DNA of 63,237 nt, filler included, from Reticulomyxa filosa (GCA_000512085.1; 14 parts of 14 records of this genome joined end to end with filler, not necessarily neighbours in it), one strand, 5' to 3'. Positions 9,781 through 58,217 are shown, counted from the first letter of the whole stretch. The notes: generated by a model not told the origin, from the letters alone. Translations and numbers: made by a program.

Positions 9781-12590
9781 TTATTTTGGTCCACGTGTCT
9801 GACCAACAATACTCTTAGCCAATAAGCTCAATCCAAAAGATTGATATGAATTCCACGTAGTGTCGTATTGGAAATTTTTGTTGGGATCACTGGAACTATT
9901 ATCATTCGTTTCGCTTTGATGTTGGATGTGACTTGGCTCAACATTTTTCACCGAGCGAACTGGAGTGCCTAGATTCGTGAAACGAGTGTCATTTAATGTA
10001 CTCGAAGACGAACGAGAGCCAATCCAATTGGTTTCCAAATTGCTTGATAAAAGCGACGAATGTGATTGAGTTACATCTTTGTCTTCACTCGTTTTCCAAT
10101 ACTTTTCGCTTTTATTTCCAAGTGATTGAACAGATGCAAATAATAAATGCAACAATTTTGTCATTTGGAGTTCATCCGTTCGAACCTCGCCTGAGTGAAT
10201 AGGATTGGTATTAGTCCATTCAGAAAGATACGATTTTATTTCCGGATGTTTTGAAATATTCCACGAATTCATCTCACTATACTTTAACAACGTGCTTAAT
10301 ATAATGATTTGCTGTGGAGAATGACAATCGCGATGACTCCATCCTTCTTGTACGTAATTCGCAAGCGCGCCATTGCCTACCCAATTCTGGAAAAGACTTT
10401 CCAGTAAATATTTGACATTGACAAGCACCTGTCTGTCAATCAAAGGTTCGTTTTCAGAGTCCAAATGAGTGTTATTGCTATTGTTGTAACATCCAAATGA
10501 TTTCATAATTTCGAAAGCCATCAATGTATTTTTTTTGGAGGTTTGGAAATAAAACGTGTCAATTATTTTGACGTCCCATGGGAATGATAACAGCGAAAAA
10601 TCCTCCCCACTGCCGACAAGATGATCATTAGTGCGATACAAAACCTGCAATGGACGGAACAGTTGCAAATAATCGTTTACACTCTCCCGATAGGCGTGTT
10701 GTCGAGTATGTTTCTTTTTCACGTAAATCACGCCATTGTGTAGTTTGAAAGTATTGAGTATTTGATTGTCATTACAGTTGAGTGTGATTGACCAGTACAC
10801 GTCTTCGCTCTCTTTTTTTTTGGAGGACTTGTTCTGTGTTTCATTTCCATGTTTTGGAGTGTCGTCATTGTAAATGAAGAGACTTTTGATCCGATGCAAT
10901 GGGGGTAAGATGAGTGGAGTCTGTTTTGTAATTATCGACTTTGAATGGCCACGTTTTTTCTTCATCTCAATATTCACATTCATTGGTATTAGTCTTTGCG
11001 TATCGACGTCAACAGTCACTAAGTAGCGATTTTCGATGCTCAAATACCATAAATGTCGGAAAGTCCTTTTTTTTTTTTTTTTTTTATGTATGAAAGAGAA
11101 TAATATGTGCATACATATTGTATTGGCTTGCATTCTGAATGTAAACATACCTGCAAATGATAGATATTGTCACAGAATCGCATGGGAAATCTTGGATATA
11201 GAGCGATGAGCAACGAGGCGATACCGACATTGTTGTTGTGAGTACTCAAAGTCAATCGACCTCCATTTAAAAACAAGAAGCCGGTGGCCATGCTATACAT
11301 CATGTGAATGCCATAGCTGATGTCCGATTTTCCTCCTTTCTTTTGTTTGGAATCGACAAAAGATTGCAGATAACGAATCAGTTTCAACGTTTTCAACTGT
11401 CCGCTGCCACTCATGACCAATGACAAACTAATGACGATCAACGCCAGACACAGTTCGATCATGTATTTTTCGACATTACATCCTTTTACACGATACTCTA
11501 AAAACTCTTTCGCATAATGAGTGATCAAATGATAGCACTTTTTATTTTGAGTGCCTGCGTATTTCATACCTTTACAAAACAACAAAGCAAAAAAAAAGCC
11601 TTTCTAATGAACCACACACATACACATGAATAACAGAGGACAAACAAGACTTGCCTAGACTCATGCAAGCACTACTGACAATGTTTAAATATATTTCATT
11701 GAAAACATTGTCTTTGCCAACTTTGGATTTGGACTTGGATTTACTCTGCGAATTGGAATGGTCACTCAAATATTTGGAAACAATGGTAGGCATTTGTTCA
11801 TGTAGCCATGACGAGGTCGGCGAAATTGCGTCCCAAAGGATTACATTTCTGCAGAGATTTTTTAAGTACACCCAGTCGGCACGAATATAATCAATGTAAA
11901 ACAGATTGTTGCAAATCTTTAATTGATTGCTTACGAATGTGTTATTCGTTTTCAAGTACATCAGTCCAATGGCAAGAATGGCACCTGACGTGGTCATGTC
12001 CGTGTTGATCGATTCGCTTTCACGCACACACGAATTGCGCAACATATCTGTATCTGACTCCATCATGTTGCCCGAGTCGGGGAAATCACTAAAGTTTGGA
12101 GTAAAGTAATGAATGGCCGCTTGCAAATATTCTTGTGATGACATTGCAAACGTCTTTTTGTTATTGTTGTTCATGTCATTGCCATTGTTGTCGTGATTTT
12201 GATTTTTGTTTTCGTTGTTTGTATCGCTCTCGTCCAACCCGTCTTCATCAAACGCATCTCCTCCAGAGTGATACCATAACAAATAGTCGTTTGCACAAGA
12301 GTTTACGGGCGGTTGGTTATTCTTTTGCACACTTCGATTGAATTGCATCAACTCACTTTGAATCAGCACATTAAATCCCTCCATATTCATTCCATGTGCG
12401 CCAGTGCTCCCACCAATGCCATTGTTTAGACCATATCTGCTAATCGGATACGAACTTCCGCAGTTGTGTTGGCTCGTATTGTTGTTGGCACTTTTCATTT
12501 TTATGTCCAATAAGTATTGCAAAATCTTGCATTTTTCATTGCCATATTTCCCGCCCATCAATGCCAATAAGCGATTTAATAAATATTCAT
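9781..12590 (-). CDS. ANAPC1: Anaphase-promoting complex subunit 1, 3' part (5' end lost at contig break)
   Basis: APC1 PC-repeat motifs occur in order: GAILAIGLMYLKTNN, RNVILWDAISP, SACMSLGMKYAGT, LSLVMSGSGQL, YGIHM..MATGFLFLNGGR, LLIALYPRFP..DNIYHLQ.FRHLW. Introns at 11654-11570 (GC-AG) and 11150-11066. Confidence 0.92.
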
Positions 12591-46735: not shown

Positions 46736-49700
46736 GTCCAACGTGTCAGGCCTGAAGAGCGATTTGTCTCGGTGCTCTCCAAAGAAAATGCCGTTTGTGT
46801 TGTCATATCCACGGTATAATGTTTATTTGAACAAAGAATGGACTTTTTTCTTTCTCTATCTGCTTTGCGAAGCCTTGATGTCTTTTAAAAAATTTTTCAA
46901 AGGAGTGAGGGAAACTGGAGTAATGGTATAACTCTTTAACTAGGATGAAGTATATGACGTTTAGTATTTCCACTATAGCAAATACACAATGTCTTAATGA
47001 CTCTCTTTTGAATGAAAGTTGTTTTGGTACATAAGTTTACTTTAAACTATAATTAAAACAAAAATAATGTGAGTTGCAATTCTGGTAGAGATGAAATGAA
47101 TTGTAAATGATAGATGGGATTAAGTTTCGTTTATTACCAATATGAAAAATGAAAAAAAACAAAAGAGCCCAACCAAGTGAAGCTGAGTAATACTGGCATC
47201 TAAAGAAAAAAATTATGTTTTGGAGCGCAAAGAAAAGATAAACCATAGAAGGAATAAAAATAAGACTTTAGTTACAGATTTGCTTGGAAAAATATTGATG
47301 TTACAAGCAAATTTTTTAAATGTACGTAAGAAACTTATGTGACCATATAACATTGCTTTACAGTGCCATTGACATGACGAAGATTACTTAAACTTGTATC
47401 GTTTCGAAATTGCAATGCCCGTATCTACAATCGATAAATGCATTGTTGCTGACTTGTTTACTTGTGATAGTTTTTATTTAAATATATGTCATATTATTAG
47501 TTTCAAGTCAATGACAAAAGATAGTTTGCGTTAGGGTCAATGCCACAGTTGAAATCAAACACACTTGGATCATTCGCGGGAAAATTCCGCTCCCAAGCAG
47601 ATCTGCAGCGAGTCAAGCGTATCCATTCACTGCTTGAGAGAACATAGTTGTTGCTACTTTCCAAAAAGCCGCTTGTCCAGTCACGCATTAGCACAACAAA
47701 TGCCATCACAAATACAAAGAGCATTAGTCATTTCATGTCTTAACTTTCAAACTGTCTGTTTCCCCCTCCAGCTCCTACGTTTTTTACTCAAATACAGTTT
47801 ATTCATTCCTAATAATTTTCAAAATATACAACAGAATTGCAANNNNNNNNNNNNNNNNNNNNNNNNNNNNNNNNNNNNNNNNNNNNTTAATTAATTAANN
47901 NNNNNNNNNNNNNNNNNNNNNNNNNNNNNNNNNNNNNNNNNNTTTCAACAAGCGTAAAAAATTAACACAAGGCACACGCTTTGTCAAAACACAATACAGA
48001 AACAAGGGTTACAATTTGACTGTCGACATAGCTTCTGCCTTTTGAGCATTCTTGTTCTCTCACTCCGCTGTACTTTATACGAACAATTGAGCTAACGTCT
48101 TTGAACGCGAAAAATCGTATTTTCAAATAACATTTCAAATAAAAAAGGATCGATAGTATCAACATGGCAAAATAAAGGCATATTTTTGCATGTTACGAAA
48201 ATCAGATATTCATAAGCGTTCGCTAGTTTCCAACTGCAGCAAAACCGTACAAGGCAATCCCAAAGAAATATATATTTAAGACGTGTAAGCGGCAATCTGG
48301 AAAATGGTGTGCAAGAAAGCTTGACCTTTTGTCGTCTGCACGAAGAGGTAGCTGTTGATTCAAATCAAACGTAATTTATGTTTGCGCTAAAAAAAACAAC
48401 AAAGACAAGAACAGACATACATAATTGTTTTTTAATGCATATATTAAATGCAATAAATGAAAGTGATGTTGGTCTTGTGGTCGTAGCCTGTGAACACTGA
48501 CTATCCAACAACATCTAATAAGAATTTGGCGATCTGACGCTTTGCAGCGCATTAATAGTATCATAATGACTTATTTTGGACGATGTCATGTTTTCGATAA
48601 ACTTCTTTTTCTTTTTCATTATATCCTGGAGTAAAAGTAAGATTTTTACAATATTTTCATTGTATCCAAGCAATGAAACTTAGTCAATATCCAAAGAATG
48701 AAGTGTTTGCTTCTTGCCAACCAAAGTCGTAACTAACTACGAAAATTACAAATAAAAAAATTTAAAAAATGGAACCACGTTCCCCCTTTGTCAAATTAAA
48801 ACTGGCTTATTTTTTGGAAACAGGTTCAAAAAAAATAAAAAATGACCCACAATTTTTAAAAAATAAACTACAATCAAATCTGATTATTGAATATTCTCGT
48901 TTGTCATTTTTTTTGCAGCAAAATAGTTGATATATTTTATGATTGGATTAATTTTGTTTTGATTTTTTATGTGGAAACGATTGCTTTTTTTCAAAACATT
49001 GGGAATTAATCGTTATTTTATACGAGTAGAAAATGTATAATTATATGATTTTTAACTTGCTACCTACTGCAGCGCTATTTGCAAAGGTTAAAGATAATTT
49101 TGAAGGGAGGAGAGTAAAAAAAGCTTATTTCTATTCTTTATTTTTTTTCGACTTTTTTTTGCTAGCTAATGTAAGTGATTATTTGAAACGATACAGTAAA
49201 AAAAAATCTCAATAATGCAAATGATCAAATTCAAAGTTTTACTTTTCATTTCTAAAAAAAATCACATGAATATTTNNNNNNNNNNNNNNNNNNNNNNNNN
49301 NNNNNNNNNNNNNNNNNNNTTAATTAATTAANNNNNNNNNNNNNNNNNNNNNNNNNNNNNNNNNNNNNNNNNNNNTATTTCACAGTATGCATTAAAGTAA
49401 GCAGCTGCATCTCTTTATGAATATTGTTAGATTTTACAATATAAATAGACTCAATCAACTTTTGCAAGTTTTTCTTTTTTTTTAAAGACGAATTATCACA
49501 AAAAGTGGACTGATTTTGATACATTTATTGTATTTTTTAGTATTTTCTTTCTGAAATGTATCATCATTTAGTTAGACAACTGACAGTATTAATTTCATTA
49601 TTGTGTGGTGTATTGGCAGGCTTTTTTTGAAAAGCTTTTTTTGGCCAGTTTTTTTTTTTTGTAGATTTTTGACTGAAACTGGATTTTCAGTGCAAAATAC

Positions 49701-50223
49701 TAACAATATTACTATTTACCTATTTACTTTACTGATCAAATTAAAATATATTCAAACAGTCACAAATAGAATTGTGCTACTACATTACAATTTTGGATTC
49801 AATATTTGACTTGTGCTCAATTGTGTGCAATTTTACTTTGAAAAATTCGCATATATTGATTGCTTGCTGTGTTACGTTGAAATATTTGACTTCCTGTATT
49901 TTTTTAAAGTGTTACTCCAAAAATTAAGGCAGGTCAATAACATAAGAACAACCATCTTTATAGAGCGTATCTTGTGTATAGTACAATGAAATTTAATTAA
50001 ATAATAAAAGTTTAATATGATTTTCTTAATGTTAAATCTCACGGACACGCTATTATTTTTTGGATATGTCGAAATATTGTTTTAGTTATGCTCGACGCTG
50101 TAAGTAACGTCAGATAAAAAGGTTTTTTCGCAACAACAGTTTTTTTTGTTGTGTTTACTTGTTTTTAAGGTAATTTTTAAGCTTGCTTTATTATTGTAAA
50201 AGGAAAAAAACCAAGAAAAAAAG

Positions 50224-53200
50224 ATGTCGACATCATTGGAGATTGTTGACGAGATGATGCGTATATTGCGTCGTCATCAGAAGAAACTACGTAAAAGCAG
50301 ACAACAAAAGTATCAGACATTGGATGATTTTTTGGTGCATCGAAGACCCAGCCGAGAACAAGTGTTGGAATATCCATTTCTTGCTCCGTCTCTGTACTCA
50401 GTAGCACACGATATTGAAAGGCAGCAAAGACAACTTCAATTACAGAGTAAATTGAAAGAGAAGCCAGACCGTGAAGAATTGGAAAGTCAGCAAATATTGT
50501 TGCCAAACTCGAACCAAATATCTAACGTGTTACAAGGCACAGCAGCGCGGTTGTCAGAAGAAATGTCAAACCTACCATCAAAAAAGAATTGGAGCAAAAG
50601 GGGATTTTGCCTTATGGGAATTTGGTATTTTTGTGTGTGTATTGTCGCTTTTTTCTTCCTTTTTCTTGGTACCACGTTTTTTTAAATAGCAGAAAGAATA
50701 TCTGCATGTAATTACTTTTTTTTTTTTTTTGGCATTTAAAAAAAAAAAAGTTTTTAAATGTCCCCACCCGCACATCTCTCCAATTGCTAATTTTGTTTTT
50801 GAAGTGTACGTATAATGCCAAGAGTGAAATGATGTATTGTTTTCAATAAAACTATGCAACGGTCGAAACAATGTACTGACAGGCCTCTTCGCTTCAACCG
50901 ATCGCACAGCAAGTGGAACAGCATCGAAACATTGCGAAAGAGTACAACTCACCTTTGGTGAATGAGGGACGAAATGTTGATGAAACCATTGCGCCACGCA
51001 TCCAAGGGACAGCCCGCCAATTGGAGTTTATGAAAAAAAAAAGAATGGTTGGAATGGAAATATCCACAGAGAGTAGCGCCGGAAGAAATGGTTGACTCTG
51101 GGTTGGTCTATTCCTTGGAAATGGCTCACACTTTGCACAGTGCAGCATTAGAGTTGGAACATTTGTTGAAAACAAGAGTCAATGAATCCTATCTGAGAAA
51201 GAAGCATTTGTTGCCTTTCCGACGATTGGTTTGTTTTTTTGTTGTTGTTTGTTTTTATTGTTATTGTTATGTGTATAATACTATACACACGTATATAACA
51301 TCAACCTAAAATGTCACACAATTAAAATACACGATGTTGTGAAGTCGGAACCATTGCGTCCCATTGCAAGTGAAATTAGCGAATTTTTGAAACGACGACC
51401 TTCGAAAGATGACATTTTGGAGTATCCAGAGCTGTCGAGTGCTTTGTCGCCAACGGCACATGAACTGGACAAAACGCTAAAGAAACAACGTGTGGAGCGG
51501 GGCATTCGTGATCGCCGGAACAGCGAGGATCTGGTCGAAGTCAATGTACTCTATTCCGACACCGTGGCACCCGCTTTGCAACCAGCAGCTGCTGATTTAG
51601 AAAAGCAACTCGGAGAGAGACCAACAGAAGCCACTTTATTCGAAAAGCATATCATTCAAAACCAGAATCTGGTAATTTTTTTTTTTTTCAAATTAAAAAA
51701 ATAAAAACGTTTATAAAACATTGAACATAAAATGAACTTGAACATGGGTTGGTGTGTCATGTGAAGTCGGCCGCACATCAAGACGCAGCAGCCCAATTGG
51801 ACAAAGAGTTACAGCATCGCAAAGACTGGAATCCACAAATCCCAGTACAAGGCAATACGGCCCCGTCGTTGGAAGCGACCAGCCGCGAATTGGAAAAAAA
51901 GATAAAAGAAGACAAAATTGAAAGGACATTAGAACATCGACCTTCTGTGGTGGACTTGGTGCATTCCAACATAATATACAGTGAAGACATGGCAAAGTCA
52001 TTACAAGGTCCCGCCAAAGAGTTGGAACACAAATTGGAACACCGAAGCAGCGTGAAAGGTGTCAAGAGGGCTGGATTGTTACCTTATAGTAAATTATCTG
52101 ATTCCATTCAAGGTGCCGCATTTGATTTGGAGGTATTTTTTTTTTTTTTTTTTGGCATAATCAACGTGTACCTGGTCTAAAAGTTTTTTTGTATAACATG
52201 TATGATATGTCACTGTAAACAGAAAGCATTGCAGTCCGAAATGCATGAACGAACAGCAGAACATATTCAAGCGGCGCAATTGAAGTTGGCACCTGCATTG
52301 CAAATGATCGCACAAGAATTGGAAAAGCAGATGAAAGAGGACACATTAGAAACCTTTCTTCCTCACAGACCTGCGCCTGAGGAAGTGCTTGGGGAATACA
52401 AAGACATATCGCCATCGTTGGTTTCCTCTGCTCGTAAAATGGACTTGTTGACGAAACGTGTTTCCATAGCAAGTCAATTGAGCCAACGCAAGACAAAAGA
52501 AGAAGTAACAGAAGAGCAGATATTGAAAAATCCTCAACTTGCCGATTCTCTTCAGCCTGTTGGACATACCATTGAAAGGCATTTGCAAGAGAAGCAACAA
52601 AACAGACGTGAGGCAAGCGATATTGCGCCAAGCCTTCAAAGTCGAATCAAGACTTTGGAAGAAAGAAGGAAAAAGCATCAATTGGAAAGTCTGTTATTGC
52701 ACCGACCCAATGAAGAGGAAATGCTGCGAAAGCATCGTCTGTTATACACAATACAAATGGCCAGCGCGCTGCAACGATATGCCAAAGAACTAGAAAACCA
52801 CCTACGAATGAGAGTTGGAGAAGAATATTTGAAGAATAAAGGCTTGTTGCCATATTTCAATATCCCTCCCGCACAAAGAGCTGCCGCACTTGCAATTGAC
52901 GAGCACTTGGCAACGCATTTGACGACACGCAACAGATCAGGCAGTGACCCATCGCATTTGGCACCATCATTACGAGCAACTGCCAGAAAATTGGTGAAGC
53001 GTCAAGAAGCCGATCATTTGTCGCAACAATTACGAAGCCGTCACGATTCAAACGAAGTGTTGGCACATCCACACGTTGCATCCTCTTTGGCCCCAGCGGC
53101 ACAAGATATGGAACGTATCTTGAAACAAAAGCGACTCAGCGATGGATTGCATGGTCGACATTCGTCTGAAGAACTAGAAGAACGCAATATTTTGTACTCG

Positions 53201-56200
53201 GCGCAAATGTCTGCAGCCATTCAGCCTGCCGCACACAATGTGGAATCATTGCTGGAAAATCAACCCACCAAAAAATCATTGCAAAACAGCGGCGTACTCC
53301 AAAATCCAAACTTGTCATCTGATTTGCAACCAGTTGGCGCGGAACTGGCGAAAAAATTGACACAACGACCACAACCAAAGGAAATGTATGGAACATTGGA
53401 CCCTCGATTGCATGCAGCTGCGAAAAGACTGGAAAGAGCCCAACGTTCTTCATTGATTGAATCGCAATTACAATGGCGATCAGACATTAACGAGGTGACC
53501 TTGTACCCATTGACAATGGCCTCAAGTATTCAACCTGCCGCACTGAACGTCGAAATGGCCCTGCAATCTCGTCGCTCTCGACAAGAGCTAATTGATTACG
53601 GGCTGATACACAATCCAAAACTCAGCAGCGCATTGGCAGCACGCGGAGATTCGTTGTCCCAAGGCTTGAGAAATCGACCGAAAGCCAGTTCGGTCGTTGA
53701 CACCCATTTGGCGGGAAGCTTGCAAAATACTGCCAAGAAACTGGAATTCCATCAGCGACGAGAATCACTGTCGCAATTGCTGAACGGAAGACCGACATGG
53801 AAGGACGAATCGGTGCAAAAGACTCTGCACTTTTCCAACATTGCCCCAGCACTCCAACCTGCAGCATTGAATCTGGAAGAGGAACTGGCATTGCGACCTG
53901 CTTTGCAAGATATGAGTCGAGGTGGACTGTTTCCATTTTCATTTTTGCCGGAGCATTTGCGACCGACCGCATGGGACTTGCAAAGAGCATTGGAACGAGC
54001 AAAGTTGGCTTCTGGACAACAACTCGAAGCTCACGGCTATCCAAATTTGGCATCGAGTTTGCATGGCGCTGCCAGAAAAACGGAAACGCATTTACGTCGC
54101 AAGTCATTGGAACAACACTTGCGCAATCGACCAGATCCTGAAGATATATTACCTCATATTGGTTTGGCGCCTTCTATTCAGCCCGCAGCAAATGCGTTGG
54201 CTCATCATCTTCGAAGAAGATCTTTGGCAGATGCCTTTGATAGTCGTCCGGCGTTGGAGGAAATTTGGCAACGAAGTGGAAGAAGAGTGCATTCACAAGA
54301 TTTGGTGGCTGATGACCACTCGGTCAGTAAAAAGGAAATTCGCATCACAGAGATGTCCAACGAACTTAGTGAAAATATTGACGTGGCGACTGGTGAAGAG
54401 ATTACCCGCATTTTAAGACAATGTGACGCTCAAGTGTTCACTGGTGGCATGAATATCCTGGCATTTTTGAGTTTGCTTCTATCATTGCTTTGATCATCAA
54501 TCATGCCGTTGATGTGCTGAAGGACACCAAACACAATCGCATTGTATTGTCGGGCTGCGGAACTAGTGGACGTTTGGCTTATCTTGCGTCTCGAATGTTT
54601 AATGAAGAGCTGATCAAACACGGACTAAAAGAGTGTTGTGAGTATTGCATTGCTGGTGGAGATCAAGCCTTGCTGTCTTCCCAAGAGAGACCAGAAGATG
54701 ACCCCATTCAAGGCGTCAAAGACCTAAAGGCTCTAACTGAGGGCGCACGACAAGTCTTATACATTGGCATTACATGCGGGTTGTCTGCTCCTTATGTTGG
54801 TGGGCAAGTTGAATATGCAATGCAACAAGACAACTTTGTTACTGTTTTGATGGGATTTAATCCATCTCATATGGCCAGAGGTTAAACTTGCATTTTATAT
54901 TGTGTATTGATCGTTGGGGAAAATATATACAAGCAAATCTTGTTTTGCTTTGCAATAGATCAACCCGTCGAAAAATGGCAAGGAAAGACCTTTAAACAAT
55001 TGTGTGAGACGCTGGCAGCTATTTCACCAACTCCTGGCCATTGTCAAAGTCAACCCAAGAATGCCAAACACATATTATTAAATCCTGTGATCGGACCGGA
55101 AACGATCACTGGCAGCACAAGAATGAAATCGGGTACAGCAACAATTATCTTATTACAATCAATTTTGATTGGTGCGTTGTCGAAAGCATTGTCAACTCAA
55201 ACGACGGAGGACGAGGTAAAATCAAAGCCTGAACAGAGTCAGTCGGGTGATGATGACTACAATCACGTATGGAATTTGTTGTCGTTATTCGATAGCACAA
55301 TTCGAAATACGTATCGAACCAATGTCTGTCTCGAAATGGCAAAAGGAATGAGAGCCATTTCTAATGCTTTACTGAACGATGGACGCGTTATTTATGTGGG
55401 CAACCAAGTGTTTTCAGGAATCAGTACTCTCATTGATTCAAGTGAAATGAAACCAACCTTTGGCACTGAAAATGAGAGATATCGGTAACATTTTTTTTTA
55501 TTTTTTTTTTTTTTTTTTAGAAACAGTAAATGATCATTGTAACATTACACTTGACCTTTTGAATGCCGTGACGTAATGCTAGAACATATTTGCCAGAAGG
55601 ATGGTCGTTTTTGAGAACTCGAAGCGGTGATATCAGTGAAAGAGGGTCTGTTTATAACATCGACCTGAAAAACATTGAATGGAATGAATTAAAAAACAAT
55701 GATGTGGTGGTTTTTGTAAATAATGAAAAATCTGATGTTTGGGCACTTGCAAAAAAAAGCAAAGCACAATTGATTCATGTTCACGTTGGTGCTGATACTG
55801 TTCAATTGCAACAAAGTGAAGCTAGTGCAAAATTGTTGTTGAAGTTGGAAAAATCGGATATTGCCAGAACCGGAATTAACAATAAACTAACTACTCTTCT
55901 TCTTGGTAAGCAATTTTCAAATGTATATTATATGAATATAAATGTATATGTATATATATTTTTTTTTGAGTCAAATGAACAATAAATGGGTGATTTTGAA
56001 TATTTGATAGAATCAATGGAAGTGTTATCGGCGAAATTATTACTAAATGGTTTGTCCACGGGTGGACATGTGTTGAGTGGACACGTTTACAGCAATCGAA
56101 TGATCAATGTAAGAGCTGCAAATGACAAATTATTTTACCGGGCAGTCTTCTTGGTGCAAGACTTGGGCCAAGTGTCGTTCACACAAGCACAAGAGTGCTT

Positions 56201-56423
56201 ATTGCAAGCTGCTTATGGAGACGCTGTGTGGAAAGACTATATCACTTCACCGGTTTCGACACATGTCCAAAATATTGCCAAACTCAACAAAGTTGTACCA
56301 ATAGCCATTGGATTGGCATGTTTCAATAGATTAAATAATCCAAAGTCAGTGGAAGATATACAACACATTTTGGCAAACGAACCTTGTCTCAGAAAAGTCT
56401 TAAAAAAGTTTTTGTCATTATGA
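50224..56423 (+). CDS. RPEL-repeat array fused to a glucokinase regulatory protein (GKRP/MurQ-like double SIS) module, ~1,800 aa, 8 exons
   Basis: Exons 50224-50624, 50883-51228, 51345-51671, 51767-52132, 52223-54880, 54959-55484, 55583-55905 and 56011-56423; all introns GT-AG and in phase. About 25 L...L..RP..EEL...IL units. From ~54335 the GKRP motifs run in order: ITEMSN...ILRQCDAQVF, VLSGCGTSGR, IAGGD, IGITCGLSAPYVGGQ, LMGFNP..MAR, LNPVIGPETITGSTRMKSGTAT, KLLLNGLSTGGHVL, NRMINVRAANDKLFYRA. Single-base frame breaks at ~50580, ~51035 and ~54447. Confidence 0.88.
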
Positions 56424-57186
56424 GACATGTTCTTTTTTATTTTTATTTATTCTTTTTTCCATTCATCCTACTTATTACTATACCCTTATTTTTGTTTCGT
56501 ATTAGTGTACTACATTTTATCCTTTCGTTGTAGTTTTTCTGTTTCACTCGTGGGTCTATTTTTTCTTTGTGACAGTAATCTATTTTTTAACTTTCGTTCC
56601 TGTTGCACTTGTCTCTCTCCATTCGAATAATCCATGTTAAAAAAAGCTATTTTACTATTTGGGCATGTTATTTTTGAGCATAAAGAGTATCTATTAAAAT
56701 ACAAAAATAAAAATCAAACAAAAGTGTTTGCTCGAAGAGTGAGAAACATAATCCTTTAAATGCGTTTAACACACTAGGGATCCAATGTAACATCACAAAC
56801 TTGGGACGGATTCCTTAGAATCGAGACAGTACCTAACATGGTTAATTGTTTTAATTTGATCCTTTTACAAAATTCCATACAGTATACTCGTTTTTAATTT
56901 TCTAATTTTTGTTCTTTGTTCTTTCCTTTTGTTATGGCAATATATAGAGACTTGATGTTGAGAACATACAACAATCAAAAAACAATTATCTCCACAGAAA
57001 TGAACTATTTGTGTATCATTTTCGATCAAAAGAAATGCAATTGTCTCAAACTACACAGCGTAAAAAACTATTTTTTTTTAAGGTATATCTTGGTAATCAA
57101 GATAAAAATAGTGAAATGTCAGGTACAATATGGCACGATCACTCAAGCCGCTATGTTTTTTTGTAAAGGACAAAATGCACGTCGAA

Positions 57187-58049
57187 TTACCAAAAAGCAA
57201 GCCACAGCAAAGAAAAGCCAAATACAACGAACAAAAGATGATTTGTTTTGCCCTTACCGGAAGAGTGTGATGTAACGGTCCATATACTGTTACTGCTTTC
57301 ATTATATGTAGCTACGCTGTTTGGTGGAATTGTGATATTTTCAATGAATCCATTAAACAAGATAACGGGTGTGTTGTCAGTATCATCAATGATAAAAAAA
57401 TAAAAAGGAAAGTCCGCCTTAAATAATATGGGCGTATTTGTTGTGTACGAACTACCAGCCATAACAACCACAGTGACAGCAGCCGCTGTAAAGCCATTTT
57501 CTGTCACATCCAACGCGGTGTCATGATAGATTTCACTTATGAAGATCGGCGCGGAGGTCATTTCGCTAAAGTTCGCTTTGCTAGAATCAAATGCATCATG
57601 CATTCCTAAATTTTTCAATGAATCGGTTAGCTTGTACTTATCTTTGTTTATTTTTTATTTTGGTTCATTTAAACGACCATTAGTATGTACCTTTTTTTTT
57701 CTTTTTTTTTTTTCTGAAACCATAGGCAGAATAATAAAAGATAACTGCTAATGGAAAATTTGGGCACAGCCGAAGCGACTCGAGTGTACTCCAACTATGT
57801 TAATGCATTTTTGACCATGTCATTGTCAATTTCGGTTTGACATGTGGAACACTTGAGCAGGGCGAGAAACACGAACAAGTTATTTGTGTTTGTACTGCGC
57901 AGCTTGACAAATTGGAAATAACGGTTTTCATAGTAGTCAAAGTGGCCAATCTGATGCATCAAATGGATTTCAGTTTTCACATTTGTGCGCGATTCATCCG
58001 ATAAAATGGGTTTTTGCTTGTCATACTTTCCGAAAATTGTTGAGACCAA
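57187..58049 (-). pseudogene. Serpin, 3' half, with an in-frame TAG and a hydrophobic C-terminal extension
   Basis: Serpin motifs VPKFSI, LKNLGMHDAFD..ANFSEM, DVTENGFTAAAVT (hinge) and FKADFPFYFFI...ILFNG. Intron at 57745-57642. In-frame TAG at 57797-57795, with eroded LPY/LP motifs upstream. Confidence 0.75.
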
Positions 58050-58217
58050 AGACCATTTATGTATAATGTATTCACAANNNNNNNNNNNNNNNNNNNNNNN
58101 NNNNNNNNNNNNNNNNNNNNNTTAATTAATTAANNNNNNNNNNNNNNNNNNNNNNNNNNNNNNNNNNNNNNNNNNNNTTTTTTTTTTTGATTGGGGGGGG
58201 TCATTATTAATATTAGA

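Follow-up and report, generated by a model that had tools for sequence, protein, structure and literature searches.

A long array of diverged RPEL-like repeats joined to a GKRP-type module in the foraminiferan Reticulomyxa filosa

Does contig ASPP01036007.1 of Reticulomyxa filosa (Foraminifera, Rhizaria; GCA_000512085.1) encode a single protein in which a long run of repeats, resembling the G-actin-binding RPEL motif, is joined to a sugar-phosphate-binding module of the GKRP type, and if so, what might such a protein do? We examined this question in a window of 63,237 nucleotides, made up of parts of 14 records of this genome joined end to end with filler, in which positions 49376-58077 are the complete contig of 8,702 bp. 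A six-frame reading combined with the splice sites gives a single plus-strand gene of eight exons at 50224-56423, with ~5,360 nt of coding sequence (~1,790 codons) and seven AT-rich introns of 78-258 nt, all of the GT-AG type. We lean, with moderate confidence, toward a reading in which this one gene specifies a protein of ~1,790 residues that comprises a ~1,190-residue array (24 to 30 RPEL motifs, diverged and extended at their N termini), a linker of ~19 residues and a complete GKRP module, and that would act as a G-actin-responsive etherase or sugar-phosphate binder. The architecture is new, its two kinds of component are both known, and it is masked in the public data by a frameshift. Profile and homology searches were made exon by exon on the assembly sequence as deposited, and the gene is laid out as follows.

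50224..50624, plus strand: exon 1, holding the start codon and the earliest RPEL-like units (Arg/Lys at 50344 and 50461); the third unit is interrupted where the frame shifts within the A6 run, at 50580-50585 (...LSEEMSNLPSK / KELEQKGILPYGNL), and the donor GT follows directly after 50624.
50883..51228, plus strand: exon 2, with three repeat slots and, in its A10 run (51023-51032), a frameshift.
51345..51671, plus strand: exon 3, three RPEL-like units (RRPSKDDILEYP; RDRRNSEDLVEVNVLY; GERPTEATLFEKHII); Pfam RPEL 14.9 bits.
51767..52132, plus strand: exon 4, three repeat slots, among them the highest-scoring Pfam RPEL match at this locus (LEHRPSVVDLVHSNIIY, 17.6 bits).
52223..54880, plus strand: exon 5 as a whole, with repeat part, linker and start of the GKRP module.
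52223..54283, plus strand: repeat part of exon 5, 15 in-register RPEL-like units plus degenerate slots.
54284..54343, plus strand: linker of exon 5, ~19 residues from the last RPEL-like unit to the start of GKRP/MurQ homology.
54344..54880, plus strand: GKRP part of exon 5, the N-terminal segment ITEMSN...ILRQCDAQVF (GKRP 27-61) and then SIS1, with GCGTSGR, GITCGLSAP and QERPEDD.
54959..55484, plus strand: exon 6, covering the last part of SIS1 and the first part of SIS2, with GPETITGSTRMKSGTA and IDSSEMKPTFG.
55583..55905, plus strand: exon 7, the variable part of SIS2, placed by collinearity and splice sites.
56011..56423, plus strand: exon 8, the lid domain (GKRP-like_C), in which ...NDKLFYRA retains its Lys, followed by the stop codon.

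The joining of the two parts can be read directly from exon 5. The open reading frame (ORF) at 52202-54493, which the first-pass annotation had described as unbroken from the repeats into GKRP, is indeed open throughout and holds LEQHLRNRPDPEDIL, LADAFDSRPALEEI and ITEMSNELSENID...ILRQCDAQVF. Its last RPEL-like Arg lies at 54245 and the last unit ends at 54283; ~19 residues further on, at 54344 and in the same frame, comes ITEMSN, the point at which homology both to GKRP and to the very N terminus of MurQ (ITExSN) begins. The proposal that transcripts be sought across 54200-54600 also bore fruit. We recovered transcript contigs from three runs (X1-X3), representing two related organisms and two studies, at 85-94% nucleotide identity to the locus and thus from relatives of the sequenced strain. 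Contigs of all three runs lack the introns at 54881-54958 and 55906-56010, whose GT..AG ends mark these contigs as derived from spliced RNA. Record 18 of X3 (1,236 nt) follows 53699-54878 and then passes over the next intron, and record 10 of X2 covers 54044-54768; both run collinearly from the repeats into SIS1. The only gap in each of these junction contigs is a C inserted after 54444, by which the repeat frame and the downstream frame come into phase (...QVFTGWHEYPGIF... / ...CDAQVFTGWHEYPGIF...). At the equivalent site the closest independent GKRP that we found, P0037, reads ILRQCDSQIYGGWHEHGNIY / ...CDSQIYGGWHEHGNIY.... The X1 contigs break at the 54444 site and are uninformative there; their loose ends at 50882 and 51773, which we take for the exon 1 and exon 3 ends, support introns 1 and 3. 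Other indels in the transcripts are in-frame or occur as compensating pairs, and 28 of the 40 listed substitutions relative to the relatives, all 40 of them in the GKRP part, are synonymous. An unpaired +A at 52669 in record 17 of X3, 40 nt from the start of the aligned contig, may be a contig-end error or a local difference in frame. Since spliced contigs cross the junction in one frame, the joined architecture is transcribed and conserved in close relatives, and these observations support a single protein that contains both the repeats and the GKRP module.

The public record presents this gene as two. GenBank lists RFI_35084 (ETO02351.1, here P0001), a 'hypothetical protein' of 1,252 residues with no Pfam family on record, and a second product of 515 residues for which GKRP_SIS_N, GKRP_SIS_2 and GKRP-like_C are on record. 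P0001 gets round the 5' frameshifts through translated intron sequence (e.g., KEYLHVITFFFFLAFKKKK and VCFFVVVCFYCYCY), and its C terminus is a stop made by the third frameshift. The second gene starts at an internal Met 3' of the GTSGR loop of SIS1, and its model is therefore a frameshift artefact; the two-gene call arises because the frameshift at 54444 splits the gene. The annotation is accordingly corrected here to one frameshift-split gene made up of RFI_35084 and its neighbor.

Three frame breaks interrupt the deposited sequence: two fall in homopolymers, A6 at 50580-50585 and A10 at 51023-51032, and the third at 54444/54445. Across both A-run breaks the repeat register is exact, and at the A10 break QLEFMKKK/EWLEWKYPQRVAPEEMV matches ELEKKIKEDKIERTLEHRPSVVDLV of exon 4 residue for residue, which indicates homopolymer miscounts. 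The assembly presumably combined 454 with Illumina reads, and we take 454 to be prone to errors of this kind. The third break sits within ...TTCACTGG|TGGCAT..., a non-homopolymer site inside the GKRP part; as it lies ~100 nt 3' of the fusion point, the fusion is independent of any correction. On its 3' side ~2 kb of coding sequence continue over four exons with intact GT-AG sites and without a further stop or frameshift. We infer that all three frameshifts are sequencing errors.

What, then, are the repeats? We count 24 units in one register, with an Arg-to-Arg spacing of 31-40 residues or multiples thereof, so that there are ~30 slots over ~1,120 residues, in good agreement with the figure of about 25 given by the first-pass annotation. 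The unit consensus is A-P-S-L-Q-x-x-A-x-x-L-E-x-x-L-x-x-R-P-x-x-x-E-L-x-x-x-x-I-L, and three subtypes recur in order, RPxxxE(V/I)LxxP, R(P/H/R)xxEELxxxxILY and RVxxxYLxxxGLLPY. Together they form a three-unit super-repeat of ~115 residues that is present as one copy in each of exons 2-4 and is also seen in the consensus of the homologues. No tandem repeats were found in the locus at the DNA level, so the repeat is an old one, visible in the protein only. In the structures of MAL RPEL motifs, actin is contacted by Leu118 and Ile122 of helix 1, by the invariant Arg125 and by the hydrophobic residues of helix 2 and the C-cap (PMC2583105). Counted from the Arg, the 24 units keep a hydrophobic residue at −7 in 23, at −3 in all 24 and at +6 in 23, with the Arg itself retained in 22; hydrophobic residues are also found at +11 (16/24) and +12 (19/24). 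The complete set of contacts, with hydrophobic residues at −7, −3, +6 and either +11 or +12 around the Arg at 0, is matched 18 times, as compared with 0.9 ± 0.9 times, and at most 5, in 2000 shuffles. An AlphaFold2 prediction for 256 residues of the array from a single sequence gives helices with no confident packing (predicted local distance difference test score, pLDDT, 53; predicted template modeling score, pTM, 0.18), which is compatible, as weak evidence, with a motif array that would fold on its partner.

Homology searches place these units within the RPEL family. A phmmer search of the repeat ORF against 1.84 billion representative proteins returned 35 matches, 34 of them other than itself. 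All of the named sources among them are foraminiferal (Elphidium, Nonionella, Bolivina and an R. filosa paralogue), and most of the other matches that were looked up are metagenome or assembly contigs. Pfam RPEL is found at E ≤ 0.001 in 27 of the 34 non-self matches, with scores of up to 114.6 bits and many above 23 bits. Searched as a single sequence against the PDB, the repeat ORF matched no RPEL chain, only the GKRP N terminus (E 0.014), and profiles were therefore needed. Profile A1, built from 16 units, was run against 177,635 PDB sequences and found the RPEL chains of Phactr1 (9.4e-11) and MRTF-A/MAL (1.6e-8), in register on all three motifs of each; the sole other row stood at E 1.5. 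As the A1 units had been selected with an RPEL-like pattern, a fairer test was run with profile A3, an independent segmentation into 14 segments cut at the non-RPEL anchor 'APSLQ'. It again found Phactr1 (2.8e-6), through three stretches that each pass alone, with MAL next. The top row of the A3 search, a designer pentatricopeptide repeat (PPR) protein, was rejected as an artefact of summation: its score is built up from eight identical matches of 3-4 bits, not one of which passes alone. Taken together, these profile and homologue matches support the view that the repeats are diverged RPEL relatives. The name given to them by the first-pass annotation thus holds at the level of the family, and every unit falls below the Pfam threshold. 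At least part of the array probably binds G-actin in the way that MRTF and Phactr do.

The C-terminal part was matched to the GKRP families of Pfam. GKRP_SIS_N (PF22645) scores 4.7e-42 (142.7 bits) and the lid, GKRP-like_C (PF20741), 3.5e-25; the exon piece carrying GKRP_SIS_2 (PF22198) is weak alone, at 0.006 and 16.8 bits against a cut-off of 27. Successive pieces align to known GKRPs as follows.

End of the repeat ORF: GKRP residues 27-61, by PDB match.
54427-54882: GKRP residues 86-215, with 4.1e-31 for Xenopus GKRP against 5e-7 for MurQ.
54958-55485: GKRP residues 218-356, by alignment to solved GKRP.
56013-56420: GKRP residues 480-580, at 2.6e-14.

Exon 7, searched alone, gave no sequence match. 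The Pfam matches and this order support the presence of a complete GKRP module (SIS1, SIS2 and lid) collinear with the solved GKRPs, as the first-pass description of a full double-SIS module had held. The Glu of IDSSEMKPTFG is aligned to the Glu of the DASECPPTFG motif of MurQ (4S12), and QERPEDD is aligned with the GKRP segment that corresponds to EGAED of MurQ. Work by Hadi et al. in 2008 reportedly assigned the catalytic residues of E. coli MurQ to Glu83, in DASECPPTFG, and Glu114, in EGAED. What we take to be the sugar-phosphate site residues of the GKRP structures are kept as well, namely GTSGR, GLSAP, the Glu of ERPEDD, the Glu of SSEMKPTFG and the lid Lys.

To which function does such a module point? 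Work summarized and extended in a 2026 preprint derives GKRP from a duplicated MurQ etherase and identifies its sugar-phosphate site with the old active site, the GKRP N terminus packing where the lid meets the SIS domains (10.64898/2026.05.08.723886). According to the same preprint the lancelet GKRP is an active MurNAc-6-phosphate etherase (MurNAc, N-acetylmuramic acid), and the Naegleria homologue has an etherase activity comparable to that of bacterial MurQ even though it is more GKRP-like (10.64898/2026.05.08.723886). The GKRPs of cephalochordates and tunicates do not inhibit their own glucokinases, and the interaction of GKRP with glucokinase (GCK) arose in jawed vertebrates through an inserted loop (10.64898/2026.05.08.723886, citing Veiga-da-Cunha et al. 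and Kamalaldinezabadi et al.). Because inhibition of glucokinase is reported to be specific to gnathostomes, the suggestion in the first-pass annotation that actin might control a regulator of hexokinase is unlikely for R. filosa. For a phagotrophic amoeboid organism, and given the etherase activity of non-vertebrate GKRPs, the parsimonious assignment is a MurNAc-6-phosphate etherase or a sugar-phosphate binder, and by analogy a G-actin-coupled protein of this kind is more likely than a hexokinase regulator. In the mechanism that we propose, each RPEL unit would sit on G-actin with helix 1 in the actin cleft, the Arg in the loop and helix 2 on the subdomain-3 ledge, and the C-terminal module would be a MurNAc-6-phosphate etherase or sugar-phosphate binder and not a glucokinase inhibitor. 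The actin loading of the array would report the local pool of G-actin and govern the attached effector, either through the location of the etherase or through the accessibility of its site, as the N terminus of the module adjoins the last motif. The engulfment and digestion of bacteria, with the actin turnover that these entail, would be a plausible setting. The relationship may also be reversed, the protein then being a large store of actin monomers that happens to carry an enzyme.

The distribution of the two parts bears on how general the fusion may be. A GKRP domain is absent from all 34 repeat homologues. Residues 1120-1238 of P0001, searched against proteins of 689-2191 residues, matched only P0001 itself, and a 249-residue junction piece matched nothing among proteins of 137-436 residues; both results are weak evidence that applies to those length bands only. 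A metagenome scan with the SIS1 exon identified four GKRP loci (L002-L005) with no RPEL-like sequence by tblastn and by a hidden Markov model of the unit run on six-frame translations. As L003-L005 have only ~0.6 to 1.3 kb upstream, only L002, with 10 kb upstream, is informative. The L002 locus, at 10001-10885 of a 239-kb contig (Ga0209914_1000031), is a standalone GKRP homologue of 43% identity; the contig is animal-like, with poly-Q/His-rich and G-protein-coupled-receptor-like neighbors, and serves only as a negative control for the fusion. P0037 (56% identity; TARA scaffold L006) has unrelated ORFs upstream and no RPEL array, and its own initial Met lies 19 residues N-terminal to ITE. As no array occurs at the other GKRP loci and no GKRP in the array homologues, the fusion looks restricted to Reticulomyxa and its near relatives. 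The same architecture, for which a search of Rhizaria and other protists had been suggested, Rhizaria being indeed the group of the source, was not found in the protein searches or at L002-L006. We found no literature that pairs RPEL with Reticulomyxa, and RPEL goes unmentioned among the matches listed for foraminifera, Rhizaria or GKRP; the first-pass remark that no RPEL-GKRP fusion had been described agrees with the literature searched, and in GenBank the gene is split.

Several results weigh against the reading that we favor. The Pfam RPEL gathering score of 23 bits (PF02755) is not reached, the best exon piece scoring 17.6 and the whole of P0001 17.4. Only 14 of the 24 units have Pro at +1 and 17 have Glu/Asp at +5, so that actin binding may be weak or absent in many of them. 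Apart from Reticulomyxa itself, just two close relatives (85-94% nucleotide identity) show the fusion, the RNA label of the runs is a guess, the cDNA nature of the contigs being judged from their splicing, and the three assembly frameshifts leave some room for gene decay in the sequenced strain. Etherase activity, finally, is carried over from other organisms. Rat GKRP has the same Glu residues and almost no etherase activity, and the kept residues are therefore no proof of activity.

These points can be set against four other explanations. An assembly chimera, or a pair of adjacent independent genes with chance read-through, might be suspected from the two-gene annotation and from a short contig in a fragmented assembly; we find this scarcely credible, because the repeat ORF takes in the GKRP 27-61 segment without any intervening stop, start or intergenic spacer, independent contigs of two studies are collinear over the junction, and the internal-Met start of the second GenBank gene is a product of the frameshift. 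If the frameshifts are real, the fusion gene could be decaying in the sequenced strain, with a truncated repeat protein at most being made. The three disruptions in the deposited contig fit such decay, as do the presence of the base at 54444 in related organisms, its absence from the assembly and the non-homopolymer context of that break. Yet two of the three breaks fall in the A6 and A10 runs with exact repeat register, the ~2 kb downstream stay intact over four exons, and the listed differences from the relatives are mostly synonymous, which together make decay rather improbable.

The other two explanations accept the protein and dispute its function. The repeats could be RPEL-derived and now form a helical scaffold or spacer, as an alpha-solenoid or as coiled single helices, that does not bind actin and serves oligomerization, tethering or some other partner. 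Such a role would account for the sub-threshold Pfam scores of all units and the frequent loss of the core Pro and Glu, and it gains from the conserved extra helix APSLQxxAxxLE, absent from animal RPEL motifs, from the long helices of the AlphaFold2 prediction and from the summed weak match of A3 to designer PPR/alpha-solenoid proteins with their 35-residue period. We nonetheless regard it as unlikely: the segments of the PPR match are identical and individually insignificant, the AlphaFold2 model lacks confident tertiary packing (weak evidence, from a single sequence, that says little about a solenoid either way), and the best-kept positions are exactly those that contact actin (PMC2583105). 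A true glucokinase/hexokinase regulator gated by fructose phosphates, whose array links hexose-phosphate status to the pool of actin monomers, would agree with a sequence closer to vertebrate GKRP than to MurQ and with the kept sugar-phosphate site residues. It is very improbable, given that GCK inhibition is gnathostome-specific and needs the inserted binding loop, that lancelet and tunicate GKRPs do not inhibit their own GCKs, and that the GKRPs of Naegleria and lancelet are active etherases in spite of being GKRP-like (10.64898/2026.05.08.723886).

Arrays of this foraminiferal-type repeat also stand next to different domains in other proteins. In P0024, a single uninterrupted ORF on a 1,980-nt JGI metagenome contig, a repeat array lies N-terminal to a GLOD4-type glyoxalase (Glyoxalase 3.3e-10; GLOD4_C 1.4e-19), and in P0028 (eukprot g1835.t1) one lies N-terminal to a CSN7/PCI domain; Pfam RPEL on P0024 and P0028 themselves is below the thresholds used. 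P0002, a JGI metagenome protein of 1,223 residues, has roughly 25 or more well-preserved contiguous RPEL units (114.6 bits) followed by a C-terminal region of ~350 residues, and is a much cleaner long RPEL array than that of the window. From these sequences, it may be that several unrelated proteins have acquired the array as a module. A broader proposal, that Foraminifera have built RPEL into long arrays that load tens of actin monomers per molecule and are attached to unrelated enzymes (MurNAc-6-P etherase; GLOD4-type glyoxalase), is put forward tentatively and is in our view still doubtful. Were it true, metabolic steps such as the breakdown of wall sugars from engulfed bacteria would depend directly on the local G-actin pool, or, alternatively, the arrays would be a large regulated store of actin monomers in the reticulopodial network. 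With its 24 to 30 motifs on a sugar-phosphate enzyme, the R. filosa protein would itself carry RPEL logic into metabolism, in a lineage of extreme cytoskeletal dynamics, and the motif would be one that can be built into long contiguous arrays. The locus also adds a data point to the current debate on the roles of the GKRP family outside vertebrates. On the same contig, convergent with the 3' end of the fusion gene, we observe the C-terminal part of a serpin gene (57187-58049, minus strand; Pfam Serpin 1.7e-19, profile positions 280-366 of 370), whose upstream part leaves the contig at its edge at 58077.

The RPEL proteins studied so far (MRTF, Phactr and the ArhGAP12 family) have one to four motifs and pass a G-actin signal to a transcription cofactor, a phosphatase cofactor or a RhoGAP. 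To our knowledge, in all of them the motifs act as a G-actin sensor that controls the neighboring effector region. The units in the window share with the RPEL domains of MRTF-A/MAL and Phactr1 (PF02755; 2V51, 2V52, 2YJF, 4B1Z) the register L-x3-L-x2-R-P-x3-E-L-x4-I-L, with the cleft- and ledge-binding hydrophobic residues and the loop Arg kept, and here too tandem motifs adjoin an effector region. In contrast to the three or four motifs of MRTF and Phactr1, the array has 24 to 30 contiguous units with a period of 31-40 residues, an extra N-terminal helix (APSLQxxAxxLE), a super-repeat of three subtypes and, in one subtype, RVxxxYL in lieu of RPxxxEL. Its effector also differs, being a metabolic enzyme-like module as opposed to a transcription coactivator, PP1 cofactor or RhoGAP. 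The closest relatives of the array are foraminiferal and metagenomic proteins (P0002; P0004 of Elphidium; P0007 and P0008 of Nonionella; P0005 of Bolivina; P0011 of R. filosa), which have in common with it the extended repeat LQPAAxxLExxLxxRPsxxELxxxGIL and the super-repeat, with phmmer values down to 1e-27, and differ from it in their less diverged units, the absence of GKRP and, in several, other C-terminal domains.

The module, for its part, has the same SIS1-SIS2-lid order as vertebrate GKRP (4BB9, 4LC9, 3W0L), with which it is collinear over GKRP 27-580 (best match 4.1e-31, from the SIS1 exon alone). Where vertebrate GKRP has a regulatory N terminus of 30 residues, however, the R. filosa protein has an array of ~1,190 residues. 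MurQ, a single-SIS homodimer, scores much lower than GKRP (5e-7). A Glu of the R. filosa module is aligned to that of the MurQ motif, and among the etherase-active GKRPs of Naegleria gruberi and lancelet the Naegleria protein is likewise a protist GKRP-type protein from a bacterivore. The Naegleria and lancelet GKRPs stand alone, whereas the R. filosa module is fused to its array.

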